Of a stretch of DNA of 64,000 bases, positions 12,167 through 52,500 are shown piece after piece. Each line of letters opens with the position of its first letter. Position 1 is the first letter of the stretch. The stretch covers positions 186,001 to 250,000 of the IMG/VR virus record IMGVR_UViG_3300023202_000247. One strand, written 5' to 3'. The translations under genes were made by a program, and so were the position numbers. The notes beneath the pieces are model-generated. The model was given only the letters and a program-made list of their open reading frames with translations, did not search any database and was not told the DNA's origin.

Positions 12167-12318
12167 TAATTAAGAAGAGCAAAGTAAAAATAGTTGATGT
12201 TATCAAAGATGATGAACATGATATAGATGATGAAGGAACGCGCGATGCTATGAAACGCGCATCTGATGAATTGGAACAAGAGAAGAAAGGCGTCTCTAAA
12301 AAAGATATGGTGAATTGA
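12163..12318 (+). CDS. small acidic protein (51 aa, not in the ORF track)
   Basis: MIIKKSKVKIVDVIKDDEHDIDDEG...; ATGA overlap upstream and TGATG overlap downstream fill the gap exactly. Confidence 0.65.
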   Translation: MIIKKSKVKIVDVIKDDEHDIDDEGTRDAMKRASDELEQEKKGVSKKDMVN

Positions 12319-27970: not shown

Positions 27971-28010
27971 AAAAAGGGTCGGTGTTGAAACACCGACCCT
28001 TTTTCGTTTT
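27971..28010 (+). terminator. rho-independent terminator after the major capsid gene
   Basis: AAAAAGGGTCGGTGT-TGAA-ACACCGACCCTTTTT. Confidence 0.85.
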
Positions 28011-28074
28011 TCCACACACCCAAATGAACCCAAACAATTTGTCGAGTCATATTATATTATCATGTATATATTGT

Positions 28075-35902: not shown

Positions 35903-36880
35903 ATGGCTCTTCCTGAAAAAAAATTGCTTAAATTAAAGCAAAAATATCAAAATATTCTTGCTAAATTTAAAGTAAAACATCTTTGGAAATCTGCTGTTGA
36001 ACTCATCCATTCCGATCCCTCAAAGGGTAAATTTAGAAACTGGATGCTAACTCAATTAAAAAATGGATATGATATTGAAGATATTTTACCAACAGTAAAA
36101 TATCTTCATCAACATCAAAAATCTTTCAAAGATATTAACGAATACTCTGATCTGAAAGAATTAGAAGATGAAATAAAAGAAAGAGAGTTAAAAAAACAAA
36201 AAGATGTAAATGTAAAAAAATCTGGAAGAACTAAAATATGGGAAAACGACTCTTGGACCCTACTAAGAATAAATTCTAAAGCTGCGGCTCAGAAATATGG
36301 TAAGGGGTCTAGATGGTGTATTACCATGCATGATGCTTCGTATTATGAACAATACAAAGCATCAAATATCATATTTTATTACTTAGTACCAAAGTTTGAA
36401 ACAAATGAAAAATATGCTTTTGCTGTAAAAAGAAATTTCGATAATGAAATTATCGAAATTGAAATATTTGATGAAAATGATAATGTTGTAGATTCTGCAC
36501 CAGATTATTCTGAATATGAAAATTTGATGAAACAAGATGCTGAATCTCAGCCTGAAGCTGAGATCAGCAAAATAAAGAGAAAGAACTCAAAATATTTAAA
36601 GTTTATTAATGAAAATTTTAATTTTCATCCAATGTTAATATCATCATTATATGAAAAATATGATGATATTGGATCAATTATTGTTAATAACCCAAATACA
36701 CCTCCTGAAATTTTAGATAAACTTAGTAATGATGAAGATGTACATGTTAGAATGCATGTTGCTGGAAATCCAAATAATAAACAGCAACAAGAGCAACAAG
36801 AGCAACAAGAGCAACAAGAGCAACAAGAGCAACAAGAGCAAGTTCCAAAAATTAAACAGTATTATTCTTCTATTTATTGA
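35903..36880 (+). CDS. protein with YGxGxxWC motif (PcfJ-related), one LRV repeat and a QQE tail
   Basis: KYGKGSRWCIT; NPNTPPEILDKLSNDEDVHVRMHVAGNPN. Confidence 0.6.
   Translation: MALPEKKLLKLKQKYQNILAKFKVKHLWKSAVELIHSDPSKGKFRNWMLTQLKNGYDIEDILPTVKYLHQHQKSFKDINEYSDLKELEDEIKERELKKQKDVNVKKSGRTKIWENDSWTLLRINSKAAAQKYGKGSRWCITMHDASYYEQYKASNIIFYYLVPKFETNEKYAFAVKRNFDNEIIEIEIFDENDNVVDSAPDYSEYENLMKQDAESQPEAEISKIKRKNSKYLKFINENFNFHPMLISSLYEKYDDIGSIIVNNPNTPPEILDKLSNDEDVHVRMHVAGNPNNKQQQEQQEQQEQQEQQEQQEQVPKIKQYYSSIY
36783..36842 (+). repeat. 9-bp tandem repeat (AGCAACAAG) x~6.5 encoding QQE
   Basis: Directly visible in the sequence. Confidence 0.95.
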
Positions 36881-36884
36881 AGGA

Positions 36885-37202
36885 ATGGTTTTTCCTGAAA
36901 ATATTGATGAAAAAGAAAATGTTTATATTTTAGCAAAATATCCAAATCTTAATATTGAGCAAATTCATGGTTTATTAAAATTTAACGATGAGATCATCAA
37001 TCAAATTTTGATTGATAATCCATCTGTTCCTGAAGATATAAAACAAATTTTAAAAACGGAAGAGTATGTTGAGAAATATGATTCATTATATGAAGATGTG
37101 TTGAGGATGGCAAGTATATATGAAGAGTTATGTAATGATAAGAAAAGGTTATTAAGGTTGCCAAATATGTATGAATATTTGGCAACAAATCTAAATTACT
37201 GA
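36885..37202 (+). CDS. small degenerate LRV-like protein with a VLRMASIYE tag
   Basis: Likely start ATG 36885 within the track ORF 36729..37202. Confidence 0.55.
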   Translation: MVFPENIDEKENVYILAKYPNLNIEQIHGLLKFNDEIINQILIDNPSVPEDIKQILKTEEYVEKYDSLYEDVLRMASIYEELCNDKKRLLRLPNMYEYLATNLNY

Positions 37203-37251
37203 AATTTTGCGTAACTGAATAGCTAGACTTTGATATATAATTAAATGGCAA

Positions 37252-38247
37252 ATGAAAGCTGTAATTCTGTCCGGTGGCGCGAGTAAAGGTGCATTTCAAG
37301 TAGGAGTTCTTCGAGAACTCTTGAAACAAGATCCGGATTATGATGCTGACATTTGGGCAGGTATCAGCGTTGGTGCACTCAATGCTAGTTTACTTGCAAC
37401 AGATGAGATGAAAAAATCTTTGCCCAAACTCGAATCTATTTGGTTCGACAAAGTAAAGGGTAATCGCTCCATTTGGAATCATCATCTGTTGAAGTATATA
37501 TTGATTGGTATCATTGTAATACTACTATTTACCATAGCAGCATTTGTATCATTTATATTAACATCTCCAAAATGGCTAACATTGATATTTGGTGTATTAG
37601 CAGTAGCTGCATTTTATTTGCCATATTACTCATTGACGCATACTCATTCTATTTATGATACAGCTCCACTCAAAAAGCTCGTTAATGAAGATTTAGATTT
37701 GAGCAAACTTAGAAGTAGTGGTAAAAAGTTAATAGTTGGAGCCGTATCTTTTACATCTGGAAGATATAAATCAGTTAGAGAAACTGAACATGAGATAAAG
37801 AAATGGATCATTGCATCTAGTGCATTTCCAGTATTCTTTCCAATGGTAAAGATAGATGATGAATATTGGACGGATGGTGGTGTCATAGATATCGCACCAT
37901 TTACCGACGCATTGAGATTGGGCGCAACCGACATAGATATCATATTAACTAGTCCAATCAAATCTGGAAACTTTTATGGTAACCCAGGTATCATTCCAAA
38001 ACAATTGATGAGAAACATAGATATAATGTCATCTGAAATATTGAGAAATGATATTGAGGCGAAATGTTTCGATAAAGATATCAAAGTTAGAATATTCATG
38101 CCCGACCACCAACTAACAAGTAACTCTTTGAATTTTGACCCAGTTAGAATAAGAGTCATGTATGATAAAGGTAGAGAAGTTGCCAGGTCTGTATTGGAAG
38201 AAAAAGTCGAGACGCTGGTTGTAGCGAAAAGAAGAATTGATGTTTAA
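37252..38247 (+). CDS. patatin-like phospholipase with a two-helix membrane insertion
   Basis: LSGGASKG, GISVG (GxSxG), ASSAFP and DGG motifs; two hydrophobic helices at ~aa 82-125. Confidence 0.9.
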   Translation: MKAVILSGGASKGAFQVGVLRELLKQDPDYDADIWAGISVGALNASLLATDEMKKSLPKLESIWFDKVKGNRSIWNHHLLKYILIGIIVILLFTIAAFVSFILTSPKWLTLIFGVLAVAAFYLPYYSLTHTHSIYDTAPLKKLVNEDLDLSKLRSSGKKLIVGAVSFTSGRYKSVRETEHEIKKWIIASSAFPVFFPMVKIDDEYWTDGGVIDIAPFTDALRLGATDIDIILTSPIKSGNFYGNPGIIPKQLMRNIDIMSSEILRNDIEAKCFDKDIKVRIFMPDHQLTSNSLNFDPVRIRVMYDKGREVARSVLEEKVETLVVAKRRIDV

Positions 38248-39319
38248 TTTATACTTAGATGCAAACGCTCATTTACCAATGACTCATGCCGCTCTGGCAT
38301 CATTTACGAAGGTCAACAATGGCCAGATGGGTCATGGTCATCCAATGAGTCCCGGTGTAACAGGTAGAGCTGCGGCATGGGCAATCGAGGAGGCTCGTGG
38401 AAATATTGCAAATTATTTGGGATGTAAGTCGAATCAAATCATTTTTACATCGACGTGTAGTCAGGCATGTGAGTGGGGAATCAAAATTGCAAGCAAATTA
38501 GCTCGAAATTTTTTTGTGTCAAAAGCAGAACATCCGGCTGTAAAACAGTCAGTGAGTCGATATATAGACAGGTATGAGAGTATGGAAATAGACTCTCACG
38601 GTCTTTGCAAAATTAATCAAGATTTAGGTGCAGACACTGGAGTCGTTTGTATTCACGTTCAGAATGAAACGGGAGTGATTCAGGATGCACCAACAAAATT
38701 TTCAGAGAATTTGCTATTCTCTGATATGTGTCAAACACCCGGCAAGTTACCCATTAACCTGGGTCAGCTTGACGTTGACATAGCGCCCTTTGCGGCGCAC
38801 AAATTTGGCGGTCCAGCTAGTGTTGGCTTTTTGTATCTCAAAAACATCGAATGGTGGGAAGAGTTCGGAGCCGGCAGCCGGTACTTCACCGACCGAGCAG
38901 GCACGCCAGACGCAGCATCCGTCGTAGCAACAGCTACGGCATTGGGTGAGGCGGTAGCTACGCTCCAAGAACGGTCTGAAAGAGGAAAGAGCTTTCAAAA
39001 GTTTTTGGAAGACGGTCTCGAGGACATGAGTTTAGAAATCGTATCGAAAGATGCTCCGAGGGTATGGAACACGACATTCGTGCACATGCCGGATGGAGCC
39101 GGAATCAAAACCATGTTGAGCTTGGGAGAAAAAGGGATTCATGTGGGATTGGGCAGCGCATGCGGCTCAGCTTACACGGGTACCAGTCCATTAATGCAAA
39201 GTATGAACCGAACGGGTGGTCCTCATGATTACATGAGGATAAGTCAATTTGGTGAATACGGAATAACTGAAGCAAAGCATTTCTTAAAAGTTTTCAAAGA
39301 ATGCTACAAACAACAATAG
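38240..39319 (+). CDS. iscS: cysteine desulfurase (IscS/NifS class V PLP enzyme)
   Basis: YLDANA, EHPAV, QNETGVIQ, AAHKFGGP (PLP Lys), RAGT, GSAC (catalytic Cys), RIS. Confidence 0.88.
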   Translation: MFNLYLDANAHLPMTHAALASFTKVNNGQMGHGHPMSPGVTGRAAAWAIEEARGNIANYLGCKSNQIIFTSTCSQACEWGIKIASKLARNFFVSKAEHPAVKQSVSRYIDRYESMEIDSHGLCKINQDLGADTGVVCIHVQNETGVIQDAPTKFSENLLFSDMCQTPGKLPINLGQLDVDIAPFAAHKFGGPASVGFLYLKNIEWWEEFGAGSRYFTDRAGTPDAASVVATATALGEAVATLQERSERGKSFQKFLEDGLEDMSLEIVSKDAPRVWNTTFVHMPDGAGIKTMLSLGEKGIHVGLGSACGSAYTGTSPLMQSMNRTGGPHDYMRISQFGEYGITEAKHFLKVFKECYKQQ

Positions 39320-39326
39320 GTGAGAT

Positions 39327-40199
39327 ATGAAAAATTATCAATTGGAACTACTGAGCGAAAGCAGGCGCAACAAAGGTAGCGTCTTCCGCGCATTTGATGT
39401 CAATGACGAGAAAATCATCGGAGTACACGATGGTGAACCGTTTTCCATCAAATTTAGAAACAACTCGTATGAGAGAGTTCAGGTTAAATTGAGCCTGGAC
39501 GGAACTGACATTTTAACTGGAGATCCGGCATCACTCGAACCATCTGGCAAGATGTGGATGGTTGAGCCGTATGGAATCCTTCATCTCAAGGCGTGGCCAG
39601 AATCAGATGAAGGTGGAGCACAATTTGTTTTCACAGATGCTGAAAGCGGAGTTGCTGTTCATACTCATGGTGTAAAAGAAGGCATCGGAACAATAGGTGC
39701 TGCTATTTATACGGAGGGTCACGTGCAACAATATTTGGGCCCATATACAACTAGTAATCCTTATAATAACATATGGCCAAAAACAAGAATACACAATAAT
39801 TGCAAACCATGTGAGTTTAAACCAGATACTCTTGGTCAAGATGGTATAGTTTATGAATCACATACTGTTTCAACTACTGATTTACGTACAAGAGGTCTTT
39901 CTAGCTGTGTACCATCTGGAGCAAATGAAGTTAGGTTGATTTCTGAGAATTCTTCGAAGAATCTGGCTATCGGAGCTGGCAGCAACGTTATGCAAAAAAT
40001 TTCGCATTCAACAGGTTTGATTAAACCAGAGTTGAGTGGAATGATTCAATTGAAATACGAACCATGGTCCGTTTTGAGAAAGAAATTGGAAAAACAAGTT
40101 GTTGTCAAGACAGCTTTTCCTGGTGACAAGCGTGTTAATCTCAAGGGAGTACCGCGAGTGGACACGGATGAAAATATAAGCATTCCAAGGTTCATGTGA
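39327..40199 (+). CDS. conserved-looking hypothetical beta-sandwich protein
   Basis: FSIKFRNN..VKLSLDG..FVF..GTIGAAIY; function not recognised. Confidence 0.6.
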   Translation: MKNYQLELLSESRRNKGSVFRAFDVNDEKIIGVHDGEPFSIKFRNNSYERVQVKLSLDGTDILTGDPASLEPSGKMWMVEPYGILHLKAWPESDEGGAQFVFTDAESGVAVHTHGVKEGIGTIGAAIYTEGHVQQYLGPYTTSNPYNNIWPKTRIHNNCKPCEFKPDTLGQDGIVYESHTVSTTDLRTRGLSSCVPSGANEVRLISENSSKNLAIGAGSNVMQKISHSTGLIKPELSGMIQLKYEPWSVLRKKLEKQVVVKTAFPGDKRVNLKGVPRVDTDENISIPRFM

Positions 40200-40534
40200 T
40201 GAAAAAAGCTCCTTCACAAATTAGAAAGCGTCCGAAGGAGCAGTGTGAAGTGTGCGGTGAGAGCAACGTAAAGTTGCTCCATCGTCACCACATCGTTGAA
40301 AGGACAGAAGATAATTCTGACAATGATGATTTCAACATAGCAATTCTTTGTGCAAATTGTCATACGTTGACACATGCTGGTGAATTGCGTATAGTAGGAG
40401 TTTTCCCTAGCACCAAGCCACCAACTGGTAGAATGTTGGTATATATACTAAATGGTAAATGTAATGTTCCTGGAATGGAAGATGCTGAACCATATTATGT
40501 TCCTAAAAACAAAAGTATGAAATATTATGGCTAA
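40199..40534 (+). CDS. HNH endonuclease
   Basis: CEVC..HRHHI..N..LCANCHTLTH. Confidence 0.85.
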   Translation: MKKAPSQIRKRPKEQCEVCGESNVKLLHRHHIVERTEDNSDNDDFNIAILCANCHTLTHAGELRIVGVFPSTKPPTGRMLVYILNGKCNVPGMEDAEPYYVPKNKSMKYYG

Positions 40535-40856
40535 AAGAAAACCAAGAATAATTGGAAAAACTCAAGAAGGCAATAAAGTTATATGCGAGCAAGACACTCG
40601 TATGAAAATTTTGACAATGGCCCGCCGGCTTGGAGGCGAAGATTCAGTAACCGAAGTCAAACAAATTTTACATAAATATGATGAAGCGTTGAAAAAATGT
40701 ACCAATGAAGTTGAACGAAAGCATATTGGTCAGGTTGGAGCGGCAGAGCTTCATAGATATTTCTATTGTAGCGGACCTTTGGTACTGGACGGAGAAGTGA
40801 TAATTCCAGGAGAAACGCCAGAAGATGAGAGCAGTGGAAAAATAAAACTGGCATAA
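40527..40856 (+). CDS. hypothetical protein
   Basis: Coupled 109 aa ORF. Confidence 0.6.
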   Translation: MAKRKPRIIGKTQEGNKVICEQDTRMKILTMARRLGGEDSVTEVKQILHKYDEALKKCTNEVERKHIGQVGAAELHRYFYCSGPLVLDGEVIIPGETPEDESSGKIKLA

Positions 40857-40887
40857 TTTGCCATGCATATTCTTTCATCAATTTAAT

Positions 40888-41112
40888 ATGGAAGAAAAGT
40901 TTGTTGGAAAAGTAATTTGGTTCAATAACACTCTTAACTTTGGTTTTATAAAACAACAGAACGGTGAACCAGATATGTTCGTTCATTATTCTGATATCGT
41001 TTGTGAAGGATTTAAAACCTTAAAAGAAGGTCAGACTGTTGCATACTCAATTGGAGTAAATCATAAAGGACAACCAAAAGCAACTGAAGTGGTAATAGTT
41101 GAAAATGAATAG
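40888..41112 (+). CDS. cspA: cold-shock domain protein
   Basis: GKVIWFN, FGFI (RNP1), MFVHYSDI (RNP2), GFKTLKEGQTV. Confidence 0.9.
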   Translation: MEEKFVGKVIWFNNTLNFGFIKQQNGEPDMFVHYSDIVCEGFKTLKEGQTVAYSIGVNHKGQPKATEVVIVENE

Positions 41113-41317
41113 TAAATTTGAGCAAGCTCTTTCTGAATTTAATTGTATACCACATTTTACAAATTTTAACATTGAAGATGTTCAATTTGATCATGAACTT
41201 TATTGGCTTATAGTTAGAGGGGCCAATTGTTTGGAGTCAGTTGATAACTTCGAAGAGTGGTATAAAGAGGCTAAAGAAACTAAATGCCAATTGAAAAGAA
41301 AAAAGAATTTTGGGTAA
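41105..41317 (+). CDS. small hypothetical protein resembling part of the 42129 neck protein
   Basis: ALSEFNCIPHFTNFNIED versus SLCEFNETPHFTNFTFED in 42129..43025. Confidence 0.55.
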   Translation: MNSKFEQALSEFNCIPHFTNFNIEDVQFDHELYWLIVRGANCLESVDNFEEWYKEAKETKCQLKRKKNFG

Positions 41318-41748
41318 CCAACGTAAGAAGAGATAAAGACATATCTATTGGCGATTTGCGCGTCACGATTCGCGCTGGAAAATCAGTCAACTTGTTGGAT
41401 GATAAACACTATCATTACACAGAAGAACAGTTGATGAAATCGCTAGAAAGCGGAAGCATCAAGTTGAAAAGTCGTTGGATAAAAGTAAACTTTTTTGCGC
41501 CACAACATCGTGTCAAGCCTGGTTTAGCTGTAGCTAAAACGATGAGATTTGCACCAAAACCACGTAGCATGGTAGATGTTGAATATAAACAGTACGATGA
41601 AATTGATGGTGAACTTGGTATAGATGATGAAGATGATTACAAGTTCGCAGAAGAAGAATCAGATATGGTGCTAGAAGATAACGTTCCAGCTCTTGCCGTT
41701 GATAAGGTGTACAAAAAACCACCCAAGTTAGAAGGTGAAGAAGAATAA
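41284..41748 (+). CDS. protein with a distant copy of the appendage anchor domain and an acidic tail
   Basis: FWVTNV..TIRAGKSVNLL..TEEQLMKSLESGSI resembles FTVKNV..IPPGRQRDLL..EDDIRSSLIKGEL. Confidence 0.5.
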   Translation: MPIEKKKEFWVTNVRRDKDISIGDLRVTIRAGKSVNLLDDKHYHYTEEQLMKSLESGSIKLKSRWIKVNFFAPQHRVKPGLAVAKTMRFAPKPRSMVDVEYKQYDEIDGELGIDDEDDYKFAEEESDMVLEDNVPALAVDKVYKKPPKLEGEEE

Positions 41749-41781
41749 TTATTGCTCTGGATATTATAGTATAGATATGTA

Positions 41782-42120
41782 ATGAATGTATCTATGTTTG
41801 CAAATCCAGGGCAGTCCTTATTGCTTCCGGTTCAAACCACCGATGGTTATACTGGAGAGCGAACGGACGGCTATGTGCCCAGAGTTACTAGTGTTTTTAA
41901 CCCATCATTAACAGAACTCATGTCTACACCAGTGGACATGACGAGAATTGGATTGGGACAATATGTATTTGCGTTCAATCTTCCGAGTGGGGTAACATCA
42001 ATAGGCACATACATCGTTAGTGCTTTATATGTTGAACCCGGAACTGGTAAGGAAGTCTGGAATATGTTTACAATAAATGTTGCATTACCTTTTGGTAATA
42101 GTAGCGTTTCGCCACTTTGA
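41782..42120 (+). CDS. small Ig-like virion protein
   Basis: Beta-rich; GxYxxxF..GTY pattern shared with the next gene; two DGY motifs. Confidence 0.6.
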   Translation: MNVSMFANPGQSLLLPVQTTDGYTGERTDGYVPRVTSVFNPSLTELMSTPVDMTRIGLGQYVFAFNLPSGVTSIGTYIVSALYVEPGTGKEVWNMFTINVALPFGNSSVSPL

Positions 42121-42128
42121 GGTATCAA

Positions 42129-43025
42129 ATGACTACCGTACCTAGATCATCAGTTGTACAACCGTCACAATCGGTTCAATTACGCGCACAATTTAGCGGG
42201 CCGGATGGTGAACCAGCAGACCTCGATGCGTTTCCCGAAATCACCATCGTGCAACCACCGGGGCTCGTAGTTTTGGGGCCAACCAGCACCGGTGTATATC
42301 GTGAAAGTGTTGGAACATACGGATATGTTTTTGATGTTGGTTTACAGCCAAACATAGGAACATGGACAGATATTTGGGCTGGCACGTTAAATGGTTTCGA
42401 AGTTAGAGGTGAATTCAATTTCACCGTTTACACAACTCAAGTTCCTGCAATAAACACTGATGGATACAAATCTCTTGGAGACGATCCTGGATTTTGTTTT
42501 TCTCAAATTGCTATTTGTAACATCAATGATATGCTGAAGTTACTAAGGGCAAGGTTGAAGAGTCGAGGCTTACACGTAACAACTGATGAATTCGGTAACA
42601 AGATTTATACTGACTGTGACATTTACACAACCGATGAATTGGTTTCATTTTTGGTTATGTCACTTTGTGAATTCAATGAAACGCCGCATTTTACCAACTT
42701 CACATTTGAAGATACCAGTGTAATGCAGTTGTTTTGTGGAATCATTACCCAAGGAGCAGTATTGATGGCACTATCGAGCCAAGCATTAATTGAACGTGGT
42801 AGAGAATGGCAAATCAATGATAATGGTACAGCATTCACTCCTCCGACAATGAGCGAACTGCTCAACTCACAATGGGGCACCGAGCTACAAAATTGGTACG
42901 ATCGTGTGAAAATGATTAAGCACACGATGAAACCAGCTCCACTTGGCCTTGGAACATTGAGACCTTTGGCTGCATCGCCACAGTTTCGTAGACTTAGACA
43001 CTTGAGGGCCAGAAGAATTTACTGA
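42129..43025 (+). CDS. putative head-tail adaptor/neck protein with an N-terminal Ig-like domain
   Basis: Position, Ig-like N-terminus, and helical C-terminus with a basic tail. Confidence 0.55.
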   Translation: MTTVPRSSVVQPSQSVQLRAQFSGPDGEPADLDAFPEITIVQPPGLVVLGPTSTGVYRESVGTYGYVFDVGLQPNIGTWTDIWAGTLNGFEVRGEFNFTVYTTQVPAINTDGYKSLGDDPGFCFSQIAICNINDMLKLLRARLKSRGLHVTTDEFGNKIYTDCDIYTTDELVSFLVMSLCEFNETPHFTNFTFEDTSVMQLFCGIITQGAVLMALSSQALIERGREWQINDNGTAFTPPTMSELLNSQWGTELQNWYDRVKMIKHTMKPAPLGLGTLRPLAASPQFRRLRHLRARRIY

Positions 43026-43050
43026 GAGCCCGTCGAATATACTAATATAG

Positions 43051-43236
43051 AAAAAACCTATTAGAAAAAACAGCGTTATACATATTTTAGAGTATGGTGG
43101 AAATAATGTGTCAAGAAGCATATCTGACTATTTATATGAAAACTCATCAGTATTTCTAGCACGTAAGAAAAGCATTATAGATTTGCATTATAGATGTGGC
43201 AAATCCAATAAGTGGAACTGTCAATCCGAATCGTAA
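43051..43236 (+). pseudogene. C-terminal remnant of a LAGLIDADG homing endonuclease
   Basis: Start-less frame ILEYGGNNVSRSISDYLYENSSVFLARK resembles IEIKGNDQTFKLMNWLYNNSNQNIRLDRK in 28075..30048. Confidence 0.6.
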
Positions 43237-43299
43237 AACTGGCATTTATTGTGGCGTATTTCTCATTCGTAAAACGCCTGCATAACTGGATATTATTAC

Positions 43300-45954
43300 A
43301 TGAGTAAGCCAGATATATCTAATATCGATCAGGCGTCACTTCGTCCTTTGATTGATAAGGTAAAAAAGCGAATAAAGAACGATCCAACTATAAAAGAAAT
43401 GTTGGATAAATATGATGTTGACTCTGAGGAGATTGATTTGGTTCCGATGTGTTTTGCTCACATCGATGTATCAGCTCGAACGGATCATGGAATCATCTAT
43501 TTCAACGTTAAACTTGTTGAAGATGGAAACTTCGATAATGACGATCATTATCTAGTGCATGAGTTAACTCATTATTTTCAACAAACTACAGGAAACCAAG
43601 CGACGCAGGGTGCAAATGAAGGCGATTACTTGGAAAATGAAGATGAAATTGAAGGATTTCAAAATCAAACAAAATATCTGAGCGAGACTCGTAGCGAAGA
43701 AGATGCTGAAGAATATGTTGATCAAGTTTTGGACCATCATGAGGTTTCGGACGAAGATGAGCGCGAGGATAAAAAAGAAGAACTTTTGAGTGAAGCTCAG
43801 CTGGAAACTAGAAATTTGACAGCGTTAAGAATGGCTTCGATAAAATCATTTGCAAATGATTTTATCAAATATGCTGGATTAAACGAATTTCTTGCATCTC
43901 TTGGAGTAAATGAAGATGTTATAGCCTTTCTTGATACTCTTCCTAATGACCAAAAACAATATTACGTATCTACACTAAGACAAAATCCAACTCTGTCACT
44001 TGAGGAATTGCAACAATCTGTTGCAATTCCTCAAAAAAAAGATCCCTATACTGACGAAGAAAAAACTCTCGTCTCTGATCTAAACCAAAATCTAGCTGAA
44101 TGGTACCTCATACAACTTAGAAAAAATAGAAATAACCAAAATTATAACTGGCTATACAACAATATAGACCATGTTGCTAGTTGGTATAGTCAGAAAAATC
44201 CCGACTTGCCCAACCATGATCTTGAAGATGTACAGTTTGAGGTTGAGCTGATGAAATCAGCTCAACCAAATCCTCAACTAGATTCATATCTTAGTAGAAT
44301 TAATGAACCTTTACGCTCTTACCTCTACACTATAATACCTCAGCTAACCCCACAAGATTTTGCAACTAATCCTGGACAACTAGAACAAATACAAGCAGAA
44401 GGTAAAGAGTATATAGATCATCTAATGCGTATGTCTATAGATAGTGTATCAGACTATTTCAAACATAACAATATCAAATTGAGAAACTTTGGTTTAGATA
44501 AAGAGAACTTTAAACAGTTATTGGATAATGTTGAACATTGGCATAGAATGCAATGTTCAACATATCCAAGTAATGATTATGATCCCCTAAACCCCGACTT
44601 AGTTGTATATGGACCTAAAGATAATGGCTATTTCATAGTAGAATTAATATCAGAAAATGATCTGATGGTAGAAGGAAAGAAGCTAGAGCACTGTGTTGGT
44701 AGTTATGCAAAAGCAGTTGAGTCTGGAAATTCCAGAATCTTCTCATTGAGAGATTCTGGAAATAACCCACATATAACAATAGAAACTAATCCTGCTGCAA
44801 GTATAATTAGACAGATATATGGTCGTAACAATACTAAGCCTAATGAAGAGGAACAAGCATTAATAGATGACTGGCTAAGTGTATTTAAGCAAGACATAGA
44901 TTTTGATAAGTTAACAGATGATGATAAACTTGATTTAGCAAGAAACTCAGAAACATCTGCTGAGATATTGGATAAGCTTAGCAATAATGAAGATTCAAGT
45001 GTTAGATATTATGTTGCTCAAAATCCAAACACATCTGCCGAAACTTTAGATAAGCTAAGTAATGATGAAGATGCAAGTGTTAGATATTATGTTACTATAA
45101 ATACAAATACATCTGCTGAAACTTTGGATAAACTTAGTAATGATGAAGATGCAAATGTTAGAATGTATGCTGCTGAAAATACAAATATATCTGCTGAAAC
45201 TTTAGATAAACTTAGTAATGATGAAGATGCAAGTGTTAGAGCGTATGTTGCTCAAAATCCAAACACATCTGCCGAAACTTTAGATAAGCTAAGTAATGAT
45301 GAATATGCAAGTGTTAGATATTATGTTACTAGAAATACAAATACATCTGCTGAAACTTTGGATAAACTTAGTAATGATGAAGATGTAAATGTTAGAATGT
45401 ATGTTGCTAGAAATCCAAATACATCTCCTGAAACTTTAGATAAACTTAGTAATGATGAAGATGCAAATGTTAGATGGTATGTTGCTAAAAATCCAAATAC
45501 ATCTCCTAAGATATTGGATAAACTTAGCAATGATGAAAATGTAAATGTTAGAATGTATGTTGCTAAAAATCCAAATACATCTCCTAAGATATTGGATAAA
45601 CTTAGCAATGATGATCGTGAAAGTGTTAGAGAACATGTTGCTAAAAATCCAAATACATCTGCCGAAACTTTAGATAAGCTAAGTAATGATGAAGATGTAA
45701 ATGTTAGAGTAAATGTTGCTAAAAATCCAAATACATCTCCTGAAATTTTAGATAAGTTAAGTAATGATGAATATGCAAATGTTAGACAATATGCTGCTAG
45801 AAGAAATGCTATTGCTAATCTAAATCAACAACAATCACAACAAAGTTTTGATAAAGTATTAAAAATGGCAAGTATATATGAAAAATTTGCTGGTGAAACT
45901 CAGCAGGAAACTAGAAATTTGACGGTCTTAGATGGCTTCGAAGGCCATGCATGA
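43300..45954 (+). CDS. composite protein: HExxH zincin-like domain, PcfJ-like domain and 11 LRV/HEAT-like repeats
   Basis: LVHELTH..E; LMVEGKKLEHCVGSY..IFSLRD..PHITIE; 26-aa repeats. Confidence 0.75.
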   Translation: MSKPDISNIDQASLRPLIDKVKKRIKNDPTIKEMLDKYDVDSEEIDLVPMCFAHIDVSARTDHGIIYFNVKLVEDGNFDNDDHYLVHELTHYFQQTTGNQATQGANEGDYLENEDEIEGFQNQTKYLSETRSEEDAEEYVDQVLDHHEVSDEDEREDKKEELLSEAQLETRNLTALRMASIKSFANDFIKYAGLNEFLASLGVNEDVIAFLDTLPNDQKQYYVSTLRQNPTLSLEELQQSVAIPQKKDPYTDEEKTLVSDLNQNLAEWYLIQLRKNRNNQNYNWLYNNIDHVASWYSQKNPDLPNHDLEDVQFEVELMKSAQPNPQLDSYLSRINEPLRSYLYTIIPQLTPQDFATNPGQLEQIQAEGKEYIDHLMRMSIDSVSDYFKHNNIKLRNFGLDKENFKQLLDNVEHWHRMQCSTYPSNDYDPLNPDLVVYGPKDNGYFIVELISENDLMVEGKKLEHCVGSYAKAVESGNSRIFSLRDSGNNPHITIETNPAASIIRQIYGRNNTKPNEEEQALIDDWLSVFKQDIDFDKLTDDDKLDLARNSETSAEILDKLSNNEDSSVRYYVAQNPNTSAETLDKLSNDEDASVRYYVTINTNTSAETLDKLSNDEDANVRMYAAENTNISAETLDKLSNDEDASVRAYVAQNPNTSAETLDKLSNDEYASVRYYVTRNTNTSAETLDKLSNDEDVNVRMYVARNPNTSPETLDKLSNDEDANVRWYVAKNPNTSPKILDKLSNDENVNVRMYVAKNPNTSPKILDKLSNDDRESVREHVAKNPNTSAETLDKLSNDEDVNVRVNVAKNPNTSPEILDKLSNDEYANVRQYAARRNAIANLNQQQSQQSFDKVLKMASIYEKFAGETQQETRNLTVLDGFEGHA
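43790..45941 (+). repeat. ~50-bp direct repeats (43790-43840 and 45893-45941) flanking the PcfJ/LRV segment
   Basis: GTGAARCTCAGCWGGAAACTAGAAATTTGAC...ATGGCTTCGA, with an 18-nt perfect core. Confidence 0.85.
44950..45800 (+). repeat. 78-bp (26-aa) coding tandem repeat x11
   Basis: LDKLSNDExxxVRxxVxxNPNTSxET units at 78-bp spacing. Confidence 0.95.
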
Positions 45955-45970
45955 AAACGCATAACAGTGA

Positions 45971-47575
45971 ATGTCGTGCTTTCATCCGCTTCCAGTATAT
46001 GCCAATGACAAGATAAAAGGCATCCAATTCGCCGGCTCCAGAGGAGATGGTTACACCATTGATCTACGTTGGGCTCAGGCAAAGCCTAGTCTAACTGGCT
46101 ATTCCGTTGCTTACAATATATATTGGTCTACAAATCGAGAAGATGTATTTTCCGATGGTGTAAAGTTCGTCATTACAGATGCTAGTGCGACAACGGTTTC
46201 CATTGGTGGATTTACACCTGGAGATGTATACTATTTTGCCGTGCGCGCTACGATGTATCAAAGCGAGTTGTATAGCTTATCGCAACTAACAGTAACTCCA
46301 GACGGATGTCAGATTTACCCAGAGGCTCCGCTTACATCCGATATAACAGCTGACTCTTTACTTGTTCCCATTGATGATATCGATTTATTTCCTGCTACTG
46401 GCATCGTTCAAATCGGTGCGGAATTCATCAGGTATACATCAAAAGATATGCCGGCCGGCAACCTAATTGTTGGAAGTCCGTCGAATAGGGGATTTTACGG
46501 TACTGATCCTAGGCTTCATACAATAGACGGATATGATGGTTATCGTACATATGATAACCCATTTGTAAGATTCTTTTCTGGATTTGATGATTTGAACATT
46601 GGCGTTCAACTCGAAGAGAATAAATTTGACTATCCGAATTATGCTCGTACCGATGCTGATGGTTACAGAGTTCGTAAAGATATTTTAACGACAGACCTTT
46701 CGAGCACTGATGCTGATCAGGAAGGTTTTCCTGCTTTTGACTTTGCTGGATGGTATAGAAATGATCCTCGAGATATTTTGGATGGTAAGTGCGTTGGTTC
46801 ATACTTTGGTGGAGAATATAACTGCGCTGATGGGTATGGGGGCATTGGACGTCGTGTTCGTGGTTACAGTGTTGATGATGTAAATAATATGCGTGAAGAG
46901 GTTCTTCTTCAAAACACAGGCGAACCTGTTGTGCTTGTTCGTAGACTATGGAAGGGAATTACATGTTCATGTGTAAACTCTTCCCGAGAAACACCAGAAT
47001 ACAGATGCGCTTGTTGTTTCGGTACCGGTTTGGTAACCGGATACGAACAGTTTTACAATCCGCGTCGTAGTGACGGACGTATATTGGTTCGCTTCGATCC
47101 AGCTGTTGAAAATTTCACCCGTAACGAACCTGGCCTAGAAAACGAATACAAACCAAACTCTTGGACTCTTAGTATTCCATCTATAAAAGATGGAGACTTT
47201 TTAATTCGTTTTAATAAAGATGGAACTGAAGAATTTAGATATGAAGTTTTAGATGTAACTAGAAATAAGATAGTTGAAAACAATTATGGTAGACAACAGT
47301 TATCTCTTACTAGAGTTCGTAAAACAGACCCTATTTATATGTGGAGATCAATTAGGGATACATCTACTATGCCACAAGAGTTGATGACGACATTGGGAAT
47401 GGTTCCTGGTCCTGGTGGTATTCCTCCGCACACACACACTATAGTTATAAATGAAAATATAGTTTCATTGGTTCAAATAAATCAAACAACTAGTGTAGAT
47501 CAGGACCATAATCATCCTATAGAGAACGGTGTTGTGATTCCGGTGTTGGGGCACCAGCATTTGATCATTTTATAA
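45971..47575 (+). CDS. putative neck/head-closure protein with FN3-like N-terminus and Zn finger
   Basis: AYNIYWS..YYFAVRA (FN3-like); CSC..CACCFGTG..GY; His-rich C-terminus. Confidence 0.6.
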   Translation: MSCFHPLPVYANDKIKGIQFAGSRGDGYTIDLRWAQAKPSLTGYSVAYNIYWSTNREDVFSDGVKFVITDASATTVSIGGFTPGDVYYFAVRATMYQSELYSLSQLTVTPDGCQIYPEAPLTSDITADSLLVPIDDIDLFPATGIVQIGAEFIRYTSKDMPAGNLIVGSPSNRGFYGTDPRLHTIDGYDGYRTYDNPFVRFFSGFDDLNIGVQLEENKFDYPNYARTDADGYRVRKDILTTDLSSTDADQEGFPAFDFAGWYRNDPRDILDGKCVGSYFGGEYNCADGYGGIGRRVRGYSVDDVNNMREEVLLQNTGEPVVLVRRLWKGITCSCVNSSRETPEYRCACCFGTGLVTGYEQFYNPRRSDGRILVRFDPAVENFTRNEPGLENEYKPNSWTLSIPSIKDGDFLIRFNKDGTEEFRYEVLDVTRNKIVENNYGRQQLSLTRVRKTDPIYMWRSIRDTSTMPQELMTTLGMVPGPGGIPPHTHTIVINENIVSLVQINQTTSVDQDHNHPIENGVVIPVLGHQHLIIL

Positions 47576-47601
47576 TTTTTTTTGATATATACCTTCATGA
47601 C

Positions 47602-47994
47602 ATGAAAAATAAAAACAAAATAAAAGCACAAAGAGCATATTTCAAATATTATTTGGACAATCCAGGAAGACAGGCTGGTCATACAACTAGAATGCTGGAT
47701 TCCGCAGCAGACATTTTAAGGGACGGGAAAAGATGTGCAATCATAACACACAGCATTGATAATGCCAAAAGATTAAGAAGTCTTTTAAACAAACGAACAT
47801 CTTTCTTCGAGTATCCAAAAGAAAATTTGAGAGTATTGTCTTTATCAGAATATAATAGATTGAAAGGGTTACAGCAGTATATCCTTCTTTTTGACAATGT
47901 TGCCTTATCAGCATTGTTTGAAGATGTTAAAGAGAAAGAATGCGATCAGGCATTCTACATAGAAGCAACATCTAAGAATTCATCAGAGCTTTGA
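47602..47994 (+). CDS. small degenerate P-loop-like protein
   Basis: GRQAGHTT and LLFDN resemble decayed Walker A and B motifs. Confidence 0.45.
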   Translation: MKNKNKIKAQRAYFKYYLDNPGRQAGHTTRMLDSAADILRDGKRCAIITHSIDNAKRLRSLLNKRTSFFEYPKENLRVLSLSEYNRLKGLQQYILLFDNVALSALFEDVKEKECDQAFYIEATSKNSSEL

Positions 47995-48184
47995 AGGTGA
48001 TGTTACAGTAGATAAATACAAAAATCTTGTTAAATTCGAAAGTCTCTTGCAAGACCGTTTTATTGGAGAAACTATTTGTGCTTTAAGTAAATTACTTGAT
48101 ACTGAAGATGAAACTGAATTCAATGATAAAATTAACCAAATATTTTACGATTGATAACATTTGGTGATATTTACACATTTTTAT

Positions 48185-48865
48185 GTGAAAAGTAATCTTC
48201 TAAAACTGCTTGATATTTATCAAAGATTAGTATCTGAAGCGGTTGCGACTCCTGAAGCTCCAGAGTGGGCACCGTTCGGCGAATATGCTTGGGCACCTCA
48301 TCGAGAAGGAGTGCCCGCTGAGCCAGACAATGCCTTGGAAAAAATCATATTTAAACAGTTGAGCGATCATTTTGGTGATTATCACAATCGTCGAAATGGT
48401 TTGCCACAGATGACATCCAATTTTTTGCTGACGTTGGTTGAGACTGGTTGGTACAAAAAAGTATTGCATCCTCCTCCGCACAAGACATTGTATCGTGGGT
48501 TATTCTTCAAAACATCAAAAGAATTGGCAAAATTTCTCGGCATAACTGAAACTGAGGTTAAAGAGGAAAAATGCAAAGTTTTTGTGCCACCAAAGGTATT
48601 TAAAAACAAAAATGGCTGGAGCACATCTTGGTCATATAAGAAAAACGTGACGCGCGATTTTTCAGAGTCTGGCAAAAAAGGTTGGGCAATAACATTAATT
48701 GCTGATGTCAAAGACAATCCAAACAGATTTCTTGCAGGGCCTGGAGGCTTGTATGATGTGCGTGGTATAAGTGAATTTCACTTGGAAAAGGAAACTGTGG
48801 GGCTCGAGCCGATAAATGTTAGGCGTGTAGAGTGGAAAGAAATTAATAAATTAAAGAAATATTGA
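48185..48865 (+). CDS. putative ADP-ribosyltransferase (R-S-E type)
   Basis: LYRGL, STSWS and EKE in the expected order; likely GTG start at 48185. Confidence 0.6.
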   Translation: MKSNLLKLLDIYQRLVSEAVATPEAPEWAPFGEYAWAPHREGVPAEPDNALEKIIFKQLSDHFGDYHNRRNGLPQMTSNFLLTLVETGWYKKVLHPPPHKTLYRGLFFKTSKELAKFLGITETEVKEEKCKVFVPPKVFKNKNGWSTSWSYKKNVTRDFSESGKKGWAITLIADVKDNPNRFLAGPGGLYDVRGISEFHLEKETVGLEPINVRRVEWKEINKLKKY

Positions 48866-48890
48866 ATCAATATCAAAGCATAAGATTGTT

Positions 48891-49505
48891 ATGAAAAAAG
48901 TTTATAAATTAGCAGCAATTTTCGCAAAATTGGCTCAAACTTTTGAAGATGAGTATGAAACTCCTGAAAGCGAACTTGATTTTCAAGAACACATCGATGA
49001 AACATTCGAGCATAACAAAGAAGTGGATCCTTCGATGCAAGAATTTGAGCTGGGAGAAGTTCCAAATTCTTTGAATGAATCTTTAAATTCAGCAATTGCT
49101 CCTTTGATGGGTTTTTATAGAGGCTCAGATTTAGAAGCCCATCCTGGAAGTACGCGCGAAGGAAACTCTCAAACGATGGGGCTTCTCGGCTTGATAAACG
49201 ATTATGCCGGAAAGCTTTTGGAAAAAATTGATAGCGATGATGGATTTGATAATGATGAGTCCGATGATGTTTCTGTTATAACGGGTACTATTGCACATTT
49301 AAATGAATTATCAGAAAAACTAGAATTAAAATTTGGAGACCCGAGTAAGTTTTGGTCTTCATTAAAGGGTATTGATTTGAGTTATTTAAATACTACGAAT
49401 CCAAACTCAAAATTTTTAGAATTTAAAAAATTCACAGAAGTAGAAGTTAATCCTGGATTGGTTCAGATTGTTATGAGTTTAGAGTCTAAGCTTGATGATG
49501 AATAA
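48891..49505 (+). CDS. acidic hypothetical protein with N-terminal KVYKLAAIFAKLAQ tag
   Basis: 204 aa ORF. Confidence 0.6.
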   Translation: MKKVYKLAAIFAKLAQTFEDEYETPESELDFQEHIDETFEHNKEVDPSMQEFELGEVPNSLNESLNSAIAPLMGFYRGSDLEAHPGSTREGNSQTMGLLGLINDYAGKLLEKIDSDDGFDNDESDDVSVITGTIAHLNELSEKLELKFGDPSKFWSSLKGIDLSYLNTTNPNSKFLEFKKFTEVEVNPGLVQIVMSLESKLDDE

Positions 49506-49519
49506 TTTACCATAATCGT

Positions 49520-52500
49520 ATGGTAAAGAAATTCATAGGTTCCGGCCGTGCCAGAGAGGGTGGCTTGGCAGCGGTACATCGCCAAGATTTCAAGGCTCAC
49601 ACGACCGGCGGTGATTGGCGTCACAAAGCCAAACAGATCGACATGAGTCCTGGTATCAGCACGTTCAACAACGTGTTCAATTCCTCGACGGTTCAAGGAA
49701 CCTTGGAGAAAATGGCCAGCGTCATCAGCACGCTCGGACAAGGTTATATCACCATTGGTGATGGTTATGATACTGGCATATACAACGCACCACCATTGGA
49801 TCAAGCATTTGCTGATGCTCTAACAAATTCACGTTTGCAAAGTGGCGGCGTTATTCTTGTTAAAGCTGGTGTTTATTATTTGAGTGAAACTGTAAACATA
49901 CCAGCTGGAATAACCGTAATGGGCGAGCCAGGAGGAACATACATTTTTGGTCAAATGAATGAAAAGCCAATGTTTCATTTGAGAACCGGAAATGATAGAT
50001 TCAACTTGGCCGGCGGTTCTTTTGGTACCATTCGTAATGTTGAGCCAATTGATCAGATTAAATTTTACAATCTAGTACTTGGTGACAATACAGATGGCTA
50101 TTTCGAATCTAGTGGCGTTGCAATTCCGACAATGACAACTACTGGTTTTCTAGAGTGTGAAGTTGGATCCAATGTTGTTGTTGAGGATTGTACGTTTTTA
50201 GGAAGGGTAAATCCAACGTTTCCACCATTAGAAATTACGAAGCGCGGCATTTTCTATGCTGGGACAAACCCTGGTAAACCAACAGCACTGTTCGTCAAAG
50301 ATTGTTATTTTGATATGCTTCAGAGTGCTGTTGAGTTCGATGGTCCAACGGAAGGTAATACTGACTCTCTTCGTGTCGAAAGTTGCCGTGCAAGATTGTT
50401 TGGAGATACTACGAGCAGCAACAGGGAAGACGTTTGTTTCGTATCTTTCAATCTGTGTAATGCTCACTTTGAAAGCAACTTACATACAGCTGCATCAAAT
50501 AACTTTCAAACAACATGTTTTTACTTGAAAAATACAGTTGTTTCTAATCCAGAACGTGTACGTGTTAGCATGGTAAACAACACTGGCGGAATTACCAATA
50601 GCACATCAACATATTCCACAAATGAGCTTTTAAATTTCTTTTACAATGATTATACTACAACTGATTTTGAAGCTGTAAAGATAGGTAATAGTTGGGGTAG
50701 AGATTATAATAGTTCTTGGTTTTTCACCGTTGGAGATGGAACAAGCAGCGTTGGCGATCTCAATGGATCAAATGCTTTGGAAATTGCATTTCAACGTTCC
50801 GATATTGGAAATATCACAACGGGTGAGGGAACCCAGGATGTTTGCATAGTAAATCCTGGTACTTACACGTTGACAACCGGTGGAACTTCCAACATGATCA
50901 AACTAGTTGGAAACGACCGTAACGGTGTAAAACCAGTTATAAATTTAAACTCTGGTAGTGGGACTGATGCTAATAGTAATCCAACAACATCAGTTGGTCA
51001 TTTGGTGAAGAATATTGAATTTGCATCAAATGGTGCAAGTTTCAATACGATTACTGTGATTGCAGGTTCTACATCTTCAAATAGATATGCGCTGGTTGAA
51101 AATTGTAAGTTCAGCAATTCTGGTATAGATTTTGATGGAATGAATGGAAGCATAGACAATGTCGTTGATATTGAAGTAAAAGATACTCAATTTGATCAGG
51201 ATGGAACGTACAACGATAATATCGGAATGTATTCTTCTGGAAATGCTTCAAGCATTTTGCTCGAACGTTGTAGCTTCACAAATCTCGGTTATGCGTTGCA
51301 AATATCTAGTGGGTCATCTGTGCGTGATAGTCAAATCACATTGAGAGATTGTAATTTAAATCAAAACCCATATTCAACACCTGCTGAAAAAATTGGAAAT
51401 GCTAGTCCGTCAGGCAATGACAATTATGTATACATAAGCGATACGAATGCAAGAGTGTTGTTGGAAAACACTACCATATTGTGTAACGCACCAGGATTCT
51501 TTTCTACATCCAGGATAAATTCATCATTGGCAGTTTTAGGAGATTTTGATAAGTATATTTATATATTTGCAAGAGATATTATAATTGAAAGTTCTGAGCT
51601 GACAGGACCAGCTCAAACATTTTCCGATGGTGGAACACCATATGCATTACCAACGTTGAGCGTGACACCCGGAAGGTTTTTAACCGTTTCCAACTCTGAT
51701 TTGACTGGTTCTCTTGCATTGCAACTAACAGGTTCTGCTTTTACAAATATTGGCGGAACAGATACAACTGGTATCAAGTTTCATAATTCTAGGTTTAATG
51801 GAACCGGTCTTGGAAGTGTTGATGGAACGTGTGTCGATTTGGATTGTCCAGATTATGTGGTTGGTTCCAGCGATTTTAGAAGACCAACCATATCTATAAG
51901 CAATTGCTTCGTAGATAACAAAAATGGATCAAACACTGGTTTGGGAGTTCGCCATACGAATCAGACTACTGCCAAAGGGTATGATGCCGGTGGTGCTTTG
52001 CAAGTATATGCTCCTGGATGGCAAGTTTTTTGTGATAGCATGTATTGTGCTGCGGAATTTAACGGAACTTCCACAGCAACAGGTATCGTTCAGCTTGGCG
52101 CAGCTGTTTTTGATGTTATAGGTGATGCATCAACGGCCAACTTCAATTTTGCTTCGGTAGAGTTGTCCAATAATGAATTTTTACTTGATAGGTTTGCAAG
52201 CGCTGGTTTGGCAGAAAGCACCAATGTCGTTACGAGAGCACCATATATAAACATCAATGGTAATTCGTTTTTCAGAGATCCAAATGCTTCTAGCGCAACC
52301 AATCCAAATAATTATCTGGAAATTTGGAACAATCCTGTATCCACTGGTGGATCGGGTTGTACCGTCACCGGAAATATATTTAGCAATAGAAACGCTACTG
52401 GTGGTCTCGGACTACAAGCAATATTCGTTGCATCTGGAAGTGGTGAGAATGGAATCATAACAGATAATGTTTTTGACTCACCTTATGTTAATAGCACCAG

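Follow-up and report, generated by a model that had tools for sequence, protein, structure and literature searches.

The DNA stretch considered here, called the window below, comprises 64,000 nucleotides of the IMG/VR virus record IMGVR_UViG_3300023202_000247 (bases 186001-250000 of 321,461 bp; G+C 40.6%) and carries nearly all of its genes on the same strand. The record is 75% complete according to CheckV and, to judge by its genes, it derives from an uncultured phage-G-like megaphage, with a capsid protein that shows 55% identity to gp27 of Bacillus phage G and 81% identity to that of a 268-kb IMG/VR record (G001). An earlier note on this DNA had drawn attention to five similar amphipathic helices at the ends or module edges of accessory proteins that it took to be unrelated, among them an ADP-ribosyltransferase (ART)-like protein and proteins with PcfJ and LRV modules, and had proposed that they form a portable tag loading effectors into the phage head for injection. 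The five helices prove to be two different things, three being copies of the end helix of one PcfJ-family module and two being N-terminal helices of other proteins; we suggest, tentatively, that they may nevertheless share one use as short docking helices. All five peptides were found in frame where the note had placed them, and they are listed here with genes named by the window position at which their reading frames begin.

37092-37133, + strand: helix EDVLRMASIYEELC in 36885, residues 70-83 of 105
43834-43875, + strand: helix ASIKSFANDFIKYA inside 43300, residues 177-192 of 884
45850-45891, + strand: helix DKVLKMASIYEKFA in the tail of 43300, residues 851-864 of 884
48194-48241, + strand: helix NLLKLLDIYQRLVSEA at the N-terminus of the ART-like protein, residues 12-27, or 4-19 if counted from GTG 48185
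48894-48935, + strand: helix KKVYKLAAIFAKLA at the N-terminus of 48891, residues 2-15
37107-37124 and 45865-45882, + strand: exact 18-nt repeat ATGGCAAGTATATATGAA, encoding MASIYE

The two helices described as C-terminal are near the C-end but not at the very end, lying 22 (36885) and 20 (43300) residues before the stop. The 18-nt identity noted between them is exact, and the window contains just two copies of this 18-mer, at 37107 and 45865.

Three of the helices belong to proteins of one family. The largest of these, the 884-aa protein 43300, starts with a zincin domain and a junction helix; next come a middle region and a PcfJ domain, then 11 LRV repeats, from which a Gln-rich linker leads to the tail. 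Related modules are encoded by 35903 and 36885.

35903-36880, + strand: 35903, 325 aa, front of a split PcfJ/LRV-type paralogue, with one clear LRV repeat, a (CAACAAGAG)n Gln/Glu run and a stop
36885-37202, + strand: 36885, 105 aa, back of the split paralogue in the +1 frame relative to 35903, with degenerate LRV repeats followed by helix EDVLRMASIYEELC
43300-43794, + strand: zincin-like domain, residues 1-165 of the 884-aa 43300, with HELTH at 43558-43572
43792-43878, + strand: junction segment EAQLETRNLTALRMASIKSFANDFIKYAG (residues 165-193), which connects the zincin domain to the PcfJ-family module and includes the 18-mer GGAAACTAGAAATTTGAC
44599-44859, + strand: PcfJ-like domain, residues 434-520 (PF14284, E 6.7e-16, 58.9 bits against a cut-off of 25)
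44932-45804, + strand: 11 near-identical 26-residue LRV repeats with a 78-nt period (PF01816, E 8.6e-50, 164 bits)
45817-45951, + strand: Gln-rich linker (NLNQQQSQQS) and C-terminal tail FDKVLKMASIYEKFAGETQQETRNLTVLDGFEGHA, which carries both 18-mers and repeats both halves of the junction

The product of 36885 aligns with the C-terminal LRV repeats and helix of 43300 (residues 771-872; BLASTP E 3e-5). The LRV repeats of 35903 also match those of 43300 (BLASTP E 1e-11; 47-66% identity), with a PF01816 score of 18.2 bits that is below the cut-off of 21.6, and the PcfJ family was not detected in 35903 with Pfam at E<=0.01. A tag-like helix, LLKLKQKYQNILAKF, is present at the N-terminus of 35903 (35924-35968). 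Judged from their sequences, 35903 and 36885 look like one paralogue split by a frame change just after the (CAACAAGAG)n run; the gene may be genuinely split, or the change may reflect a slip within the repeat.

A second exact 18-mer, GGAAACTAGAAATTTGAC, at 43803-43820 and 45906-45923, links the internal site of 43300 to its tail, and EAQLETRNLTAL of the internal site can be aligned with ETQQETRNLTVL of the tail. Indeed, the tail is a rearranged echo of the whole junction (...ETRNLTAL-RMASIKSFANDFIKYAG against KMASIYEKFAG-ETQQETRNLTVL...), and the motifs [RK]MA[SA]I and TRNLT are confined to these sites in all six frames of the whole genome. Since two exact 18-nt strings are shared, the three copies stem from duplication or gene conversion, and the strongest argument for a tag, that drawn from unrelated proteins with 18 identical nucleotides, falls because BLASTP homology and exact repeats together amount to ordinary paralogy. 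The helices of 36885, of the 43300 tail and of the 43300 interior were thus wrongly assigned to unrelated proteins, being copies of one PcfJ-family-module end helix, while the description holds for the remaining two, those of the ART-like protein and the orphan 48891.

Alignments of 43300 with stand-alone PcfJ relatives, found in other samples, begin at residue 188-196 of 43300, and the MNWY.KI starts of the relatives therefore correspond to its internal helix. In four of six such relatives the N-terminal motif is repeated at the very C-end (..NNWYVKIKKS-stop, ..NNWYGRIA-stop). The stand-alone proteins P0013, P0015, P0018 and P0019 open with MNWY.KI, and ..(N/G)WY.K(I/T).. immediately precedes their stop. 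Since these relatives show the same echo in other residues, the repetition of an N-terminal helix near the C-end is a trait of the PcfJ module family. In the phage studied here the helix copies have been kept alike at the DNA level, and the split paralogue 35903/36885 bears a related helix at each end. In 43300 the module has been fused behind a zincin domain, and its N-terminal helix has thereby become the "internal" copy at the domain junction.

The zincin domain is common to 13 homologues, with 48-61% identity, whose C-terminal parts all differ, and residues H87, E88 and H91 are invariant. An AlphaFold2 (AF2) model of the domain has a predicted local distance difference test (pLDDT) value of 85, and its top-50 structural matches are all zincin peptidases, including Wss1 (Z 7.5, the highest), selecase, SprT-type proteins and the VgrG2b effector. 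In several family members an L-x-K-hydrophobic-A helix follows right after the domain. Weak matches to PF13699, eCIS_core (DUF4157), occur in 10 of 14 family members (best E 0.0012), none of them above the cut-off. DUF4157 is an N-terminal domain lying in front of, or beside, toxins of contractile injection systems and its role is unknown (PMC8213781). The zincin family has the corresponding architecture, with an N-terminal HExxH zincin, a hypervariable C-terminal cargo, a contractile-tail gene cluster and toxin-like neighbours; it differs in being encoded by a phage rather than a tailocin-like particle and in its Pfam score (15.9 against a cut-off of 22 bits). Zincin peptidases are also the commonest domain of phage polyvalent proteins, which they have been proposed to process (PMC5512222). 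43300 resembles those proteins in being multidomain and in combining a zincin peptidase with conflict-type domains, and polyvalent proteins have been proposed to be co-delivered with DNA and then cut; in contrast, PcfJ is absent from the text of that paper, and delivery and processing of 43300 are putative.

The zincin gene lies among structural genes in three genomes and occupies the same place in two relatives, L016 and L017, where the gene order is patatin, aminotransferase, cold-shock, 112-aa, 302-aa, zincin, 534-aa, 1185-aa, 125-aa and ~1750-aa. Because of this shared position we regard it as a fixed member of the tail/baseplate part of the structural module, with a C-terminal part that is swappable. 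The region following it in the window contains these features.

45971-47575, + strand: 534-aa structural-module protein that follows the zincin gene here and in two relatives (51-53% identity to the L016/L017 counterpart)
47602-47994, + strand: 130-aa protein, first gene of an insertion, without counterpart between the 534-aa and 1185-aa genes of L016/L017
48008-48154, + strand: start-less remnant of a 3' gene end, recognised by comparison with L003, where the whole 158-aa open reading frame is present
48161-48865, + strand: ART-like protein, probable start GTG 48185, with PEAP from 48251, YRG from 48488, STS from 48620 and ExE from 48782
48891-49505, + strand: orphan acidic 204-aa protein with N-terminal helix MKKVYKLAAIFAKLAQ (48894-48935)
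49520-53080, + strand: 1186-aa beta-helix-type structural protein, placed by synteny, lying directly after the 534-aa gene in relatives

The 534-aa protein matches phrog_38102, annotated "virion structural protein", with E 8e-5. In L016 and L017 the 534-aa gene and the counterpart of the 1186-aa gene abut, which shows that 47602, the ART gene and 48891 constitute an insertion between them. A mosaic breakpoint is located near 48030, where the 91%-identical L003 diverges. The 47602 protein yielded no Pfam or NCBIfam match, and a site scan for promoters and terminators around the insertion gave nothing above shuffles.

The assignment of 48161 as an ART, made earlier from the letters alone, is upheld by its fold, its catalytic residues and the NADAR or ADP-ribosylglycohydrolase (ARH) genes that neighbour its relatives. 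Database searches returned 50 matches, that is 49 relatives besides the protein itself, many of them on contigs of 140-490 kb, and in 45 aligned sequences the R-S-E signature is invariant or nearly so at R111 (YRG), S153/S155 (S-x-S) and E208/E210 (E-x-E). The AF2 model has a pLDDT of 89.8 and nearly all of its ~40 best structural matches are ARTs, including pertussis S1, Vis, C3, Tre1 and Scabin, all of them weak (Z <= 6.2); there was no Pfam match. In relatives the ART gene adjoins a NADAR gene (L011, L012) or lies near an ADP-ribosylglycohydrolase gene (ADP_ribosyl_GH; L004, L010), neighbourhoods that resemble toxin/antidote pairs, and the present genome has a NADAR gene (G000:C1:126556-127017) ~107 kb from the ART gene. 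The accessory, effector-like nature proposed for the tagged proteins is borne out for the ART, and 43300 has a zincin domain of the kind found before variable cargo.

An N-terminal extension precedes the conserved PEAP motif in 43 of the 49 ART relatives. It mostly forms a helix of the same kind, for example MDSLLKLAYLFEEKYA, MNLLRIAARV, ..ISIAASIFEKLA, ..MSIFAKLA and MYERLYKLSSIFYKLA, a few of the 43 lacking a clear helix, and a linker of 0-15 residues separates it from PEAP. Since the extension has been kept in so many relatives with a varying linker, the sequences point to an appended element under selection, and the pattern of extensions in relatives makes GTG 48185 the probable start of the ART gene. 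The copy in L003 (621-1211) runs through three frames over its first ~70 codons, with two frame changes, the result of either an assembly error or a broken gene.

For 48891 the databases of 5.8 and 1.8 billion proteins contained a single relative, with 84% identity, in which the tag reads MKKVDKLAAIFAKWAQ. Word, exhaustive HMMER and Atlas searches provided nothing useful on further relatives, two weak matches being Ig-repeat proteins, and these searches gave no lead to a family or fold. No close relatives of the region, 48891, the ART or the zincin domain were found in the phage collection by DNA and protein searches, and searches of IMG/VR yielded one near-identical contig (99.8%) and three ART loci. 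That the ART and 48891 carry an appended N-terminal amphipathic helix with the pattern hydrophobic-L-K-hydrophobic-x-x-I-Y/F-x-x-hydrophobic is, on these results, demonstrated in part.

The likeness between the PcfJ-family helices and those of the ART and 48891 is, in our judgement, probably real, with considerable room for doubt. The earlier claim of a short terminal helix shared beyond one family gains modest statistical support from the comparisons, while the scores alone are within chance and the profiles are mixed. Among ~94,000 genome windows the 43300 tail and the 48891 helix are reciprocal best matches, and both of the best genome-wide matches of the ART helix are PcfJ-family end helices, the second being the N-terminus of 35903, which the earlier note had not listed. 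All of the top five matches of the 43300 tail lie at protein ends (P<0.003) and, once the PcfJ family is left out, two of its top five are terminal and also within 15 kb (P = 0.0005 with 2000 column-permuted queries); the ART and 48891 genes lie within 5 kb of the seed gene. Terminal enrichment recurs in an independent set of 223 proteins from relatives, where a profile of the window's four tags prefers termini (6 of the top 10, P = 0.013); its best match there is MNYLELSKIAGLFDTLAG, at the N-terminus encoded by an accessory gene that adjoins the L017 zincin gene. Compared with 400 amphipathic internal controls, the 48891 tag also does better (top-20, P = 0.003). Whole-genome profile scans gave a mixed outcome. 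One profile, derived from foreign ART N-termini, ranked the 48891 N-terminus first (18.2) and the 43300 tail second (17.3) among the 94,000 windows, against a shuffle maximum of 14.1 +/- 1.5; other variants were unstable.

An alternative account is that the MASIYE/ETRNLT copies are leftovers of duplication and that the ART and 48891 have ordinary amphipathic helices, no function being shared. We consider this account doubtful but a serious contender, and much of what favours it weighs equally against a common docking function. Among shuffled proteomes, 10-23% reach as their genome-wide maximum the scores that the 48891 (32) and ART (26-31) helices have against the 43300 tail, and for 24% of random real 15-mers a match of at least 32 exists elsewhere. 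As queries, two of the four tags, those of 36885 and the ART, showed no terminal enrichment. In five other profile variants 48891 was top in three and the 43300 tail was among the top matches in none, the outcome varying with the motif width and with inclusion of the initiator Met, and per-sequence alignments gave mild enrichment only. The genome is, moreover, full of paralogue repeats of at least 18 nt. Further points against a common docking function are that the thresholds of the 15-kb/terminal test, and the choice of the L-x-K-hydrophobic-A and 35903 N-terminus patterns, were made after the data had been seen; that in the sole relative of 48891 a hydrophobic position of the tag has changed (Y5D); that ART relatives in other megaphages lie among replication and small genes, outside structural modules; and that the G001 record (62% complete) has a tagged ART whereas zincin, PcfJ and 48891 genes were not detected in it. 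A co-fold of the zincin domain (1-162) with 48891 (1-45) scored 0.01 and, although counted on this side, it is evidence neither way. Chance and paralogy are harder to reconcile with best matches that are reciprocal, terminal and near the seed gene, with the two PcfJ-family end helices found by the ART helix, with an N-terminal helix kept across the ART family and with terminal enrichment in the independent protein set. Two further candidates were set aside: tag-like sequences at the capsid N-terminus (DTLVKYAAIIEE) and at the C-terminus of 25097, a possible scaffold (DRIVDLAKFFQKFFQ), had scores within noise, and a membrane-targeting function is not supported as the ART-family helices are not consistently cationic.

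We prefer, tentatively and with slightly more doubt than belief, the interpretation that the two kinds of helix share one use, as short docking helices on accessory proteins of a tail-module hotspot, and the end echo of the stand-alone PcfJ relatives also speaks for it. Accessory proteins of the insertion-prone tail/baseplate module would bind a common partner through these helices, and the candidate partners would be the head interior, the tail, the zincin domain or the LRV solenoid. Docking peptides fit the observations because the helices are positioned at ends and module edges and are joined by flexible linkers, Gln-rich in 43300 and variable in the ART family. The likeliest purpose would be to attach proteins to the virion or to load them into it, given that the zincin gene has a fixed structural setting and given the analogy with DUF4157 and the precedent of T4 Alt. 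The solid results are the paralogy and end echo of the PcfJ module, the zincin gene with variable cargo at a fixed place, the ART assignment and the three-gene insertion; the cross-family tag is a lead of moderate strength. If the docking interpretation is true, it provides a sequence handle on the proteins that megaphages bring into the cell and a second portable targeting peptide besides that of T4, one that works at either end. Should the cross-family likeness be due to chance, a duplicated gene family and an accessory-gene hotspot remain, both of them ordinary. Quite apart from the tag, an injection-system-type zincin with swappable cargo at a fixed phage tail-module site links the polyvalent effectors of phages to tailocin-like DUF4157 toxins.

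A bolder version of the docking interpretation, which we consider unlikely, is that the helix constitutes a portable loading or docking signal, usable at either protein end, which phage-G-like megaphages would read through a conserved component of the virion. With such a signal, injected accessory proteins, including ARTs, PcfJ-LRV effectors and orphans, would be predictable from sequence, and appending ~15 residues could allow foreign cargo to be loaded. Payload signals of Photorhabdus virulence cassettes (PVC) offer a parallel, in that a portable terminal peptide loads unrelated payloads into a phage-tail-like machine (PMC11495950); those signals, in contrast, are ~50 residues long, N-terminal and dependent on the Pvc15 ATPase, and no such partner was looked for here.

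The mechanism originally envisaged was that of T4-like capsid targeting, whereby the helix would bind the scaffold or core, the cargo would be trapped, the tag clipped by the prohead protease and the cargo injected with the DNA. T4 Alt provides the precedent, an ART that is packaged and has a short targeting helix at its N-terminus (PMC5512222), and the parallel extends to a short amphipathic helix at a protein end, an ART among the carriers and a large myovirus. The tagged genes, moreover, are located between the major capsid gene and the sheath gene of the structural module, whose landmarks are as follows.

1113: terminase
2980: portal
12315-15860: 1181-aa protein with a prohead-protease region at the front (~residues 106-330)
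26909: major capsid protein
59946: tail sheath

In T4 the signal, of ~10 residues, is found strictly at the N-terminus, and gp21 cleaves it after L/I-x-E. Here only the 48891 and ART helices are N-terminal, each being followed ~10 residues later by a T-P-E that is too short to judge, and the other three copies are internal or C-terminal. The protease also seems to be of another type, its region in the 12315 protein weakly matching NF045541, a prohead protease/major-capsid fusion family (E 6e-8, far below the cut-off), and phrog_18299; these family-profile matches gave no evidence of gp21-like character, and the 1181-aa protein is much longer than usual proteases. The tag profiles give no good score to any head-module protein between portal and capsid, the genes of ART relatives are found away from structural modules, and the multi-omics paper on phage G does not mention cleavage or processing of head proteins. 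T4-style I-x-E cleavage was dropped as a candidate, since nothing pointed to a gp21-type protease and sequence comparison with the PDB gave no match. Because copies are internal or C-terminal, the protease bears no gp21 sign and the head-module proteins lack the tag, a strict T4-type mechanism is unlikely, and capsid packaging and cleavage, considered here from genes, are candidates only; we give T4-like targeting little credence.

In a different role, and one that we regard as very unlikely, the helix would be a processing site recognised and cut by the zincin of 43300, in cis at the junction and in the tail and in trans on tagged neighbours. The copies do lie at module edges, zincins are both the commonest domains and the proposed processors of polyvalent proteins (PMC5512222), and DUF4157 genes adjoin or are fused to toxins (PMC8213781); the helix that directly follows the domain in several zincin-family members, and the tagged accessory gene adjoining the zincin gene in L017, would be compatible with such a role. 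Against this, the AF2 model leaves the junction helix outside the cleft (pLDDT ~57-62 there), a genome record in which no zincin gene could be detected has tagged ARTs, and the stand-alone PcfJ relatives have the end echo without a zincin domain.

The arrangement of 43300 also recalls the MuF-domain polymorphic toxins of temperate phages and CdiA/Rhs proteins, which have a conserved N-terminal part, a short junction and swappable C-terminal modules, although here the junction is echoed at the C-end of the same module and no immunity gene was recognised. That the repeats are simply DNA-level short homologies bracketing a variable PcfJ-LRV cassette and promoting cargo swapping, like polymorphic-toxin junctions, would accommodate the two exact 18-nt direct repeats that bracket or link modules, the conserved zincin domain beyond whose junction everything differs between relatives, and the mosaic breakpoint with its gene remnant at 48008-48154, but it is scarcely probable given that the 5' ends of the ART and 48891 genes share no long word with the junction, only the family's own copies doing so, that their helices show only ~67% nucleotide identity to the tail (hand count on codons), and that the echo is conserved at the protein level with other sequences in distant relatives.

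Several minor features of the window and genome were also observed. Within the structural module, 37252-41112 contains genes for a patatin-like phospholipase, a class-V aminotransferase, an HNH protein and a cold-shock protein, in an order which, the HNH gene excepted, is kept in a 344-kb relative (L017:2476-5658). Directly 3' of the capsid gene, 27982-30048 carries a single 688-aa endonuclease plus methyltransferase-like gene, which lies where the G+C of the window is lowest, 28.5% at 28-30 kb, and may be a mobile insertion. The neighbouring pairs 30421-31947/34602-35879 and 32641-32946/32963-34012 have ~45 N-terminal residues in common, exemplified by ..FTVNFTVKN.SSK..K.FG.PI.PGRQRDLLAI, and look like paralogous tail-spike-like proteins. 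Outside the window, an 80-nt tandem array is present at the record start (G000:C1:47-530) and several dispersed repeat families of 60-290 nt, representing paralogous genes, are found at many sites at 25-80 kb of the genome. In the G001 record, two partial capsid-protein-like stretches with 49-56% identity (G001:C1:44843-45430; L014, L015) lie far from the full capsid gene.

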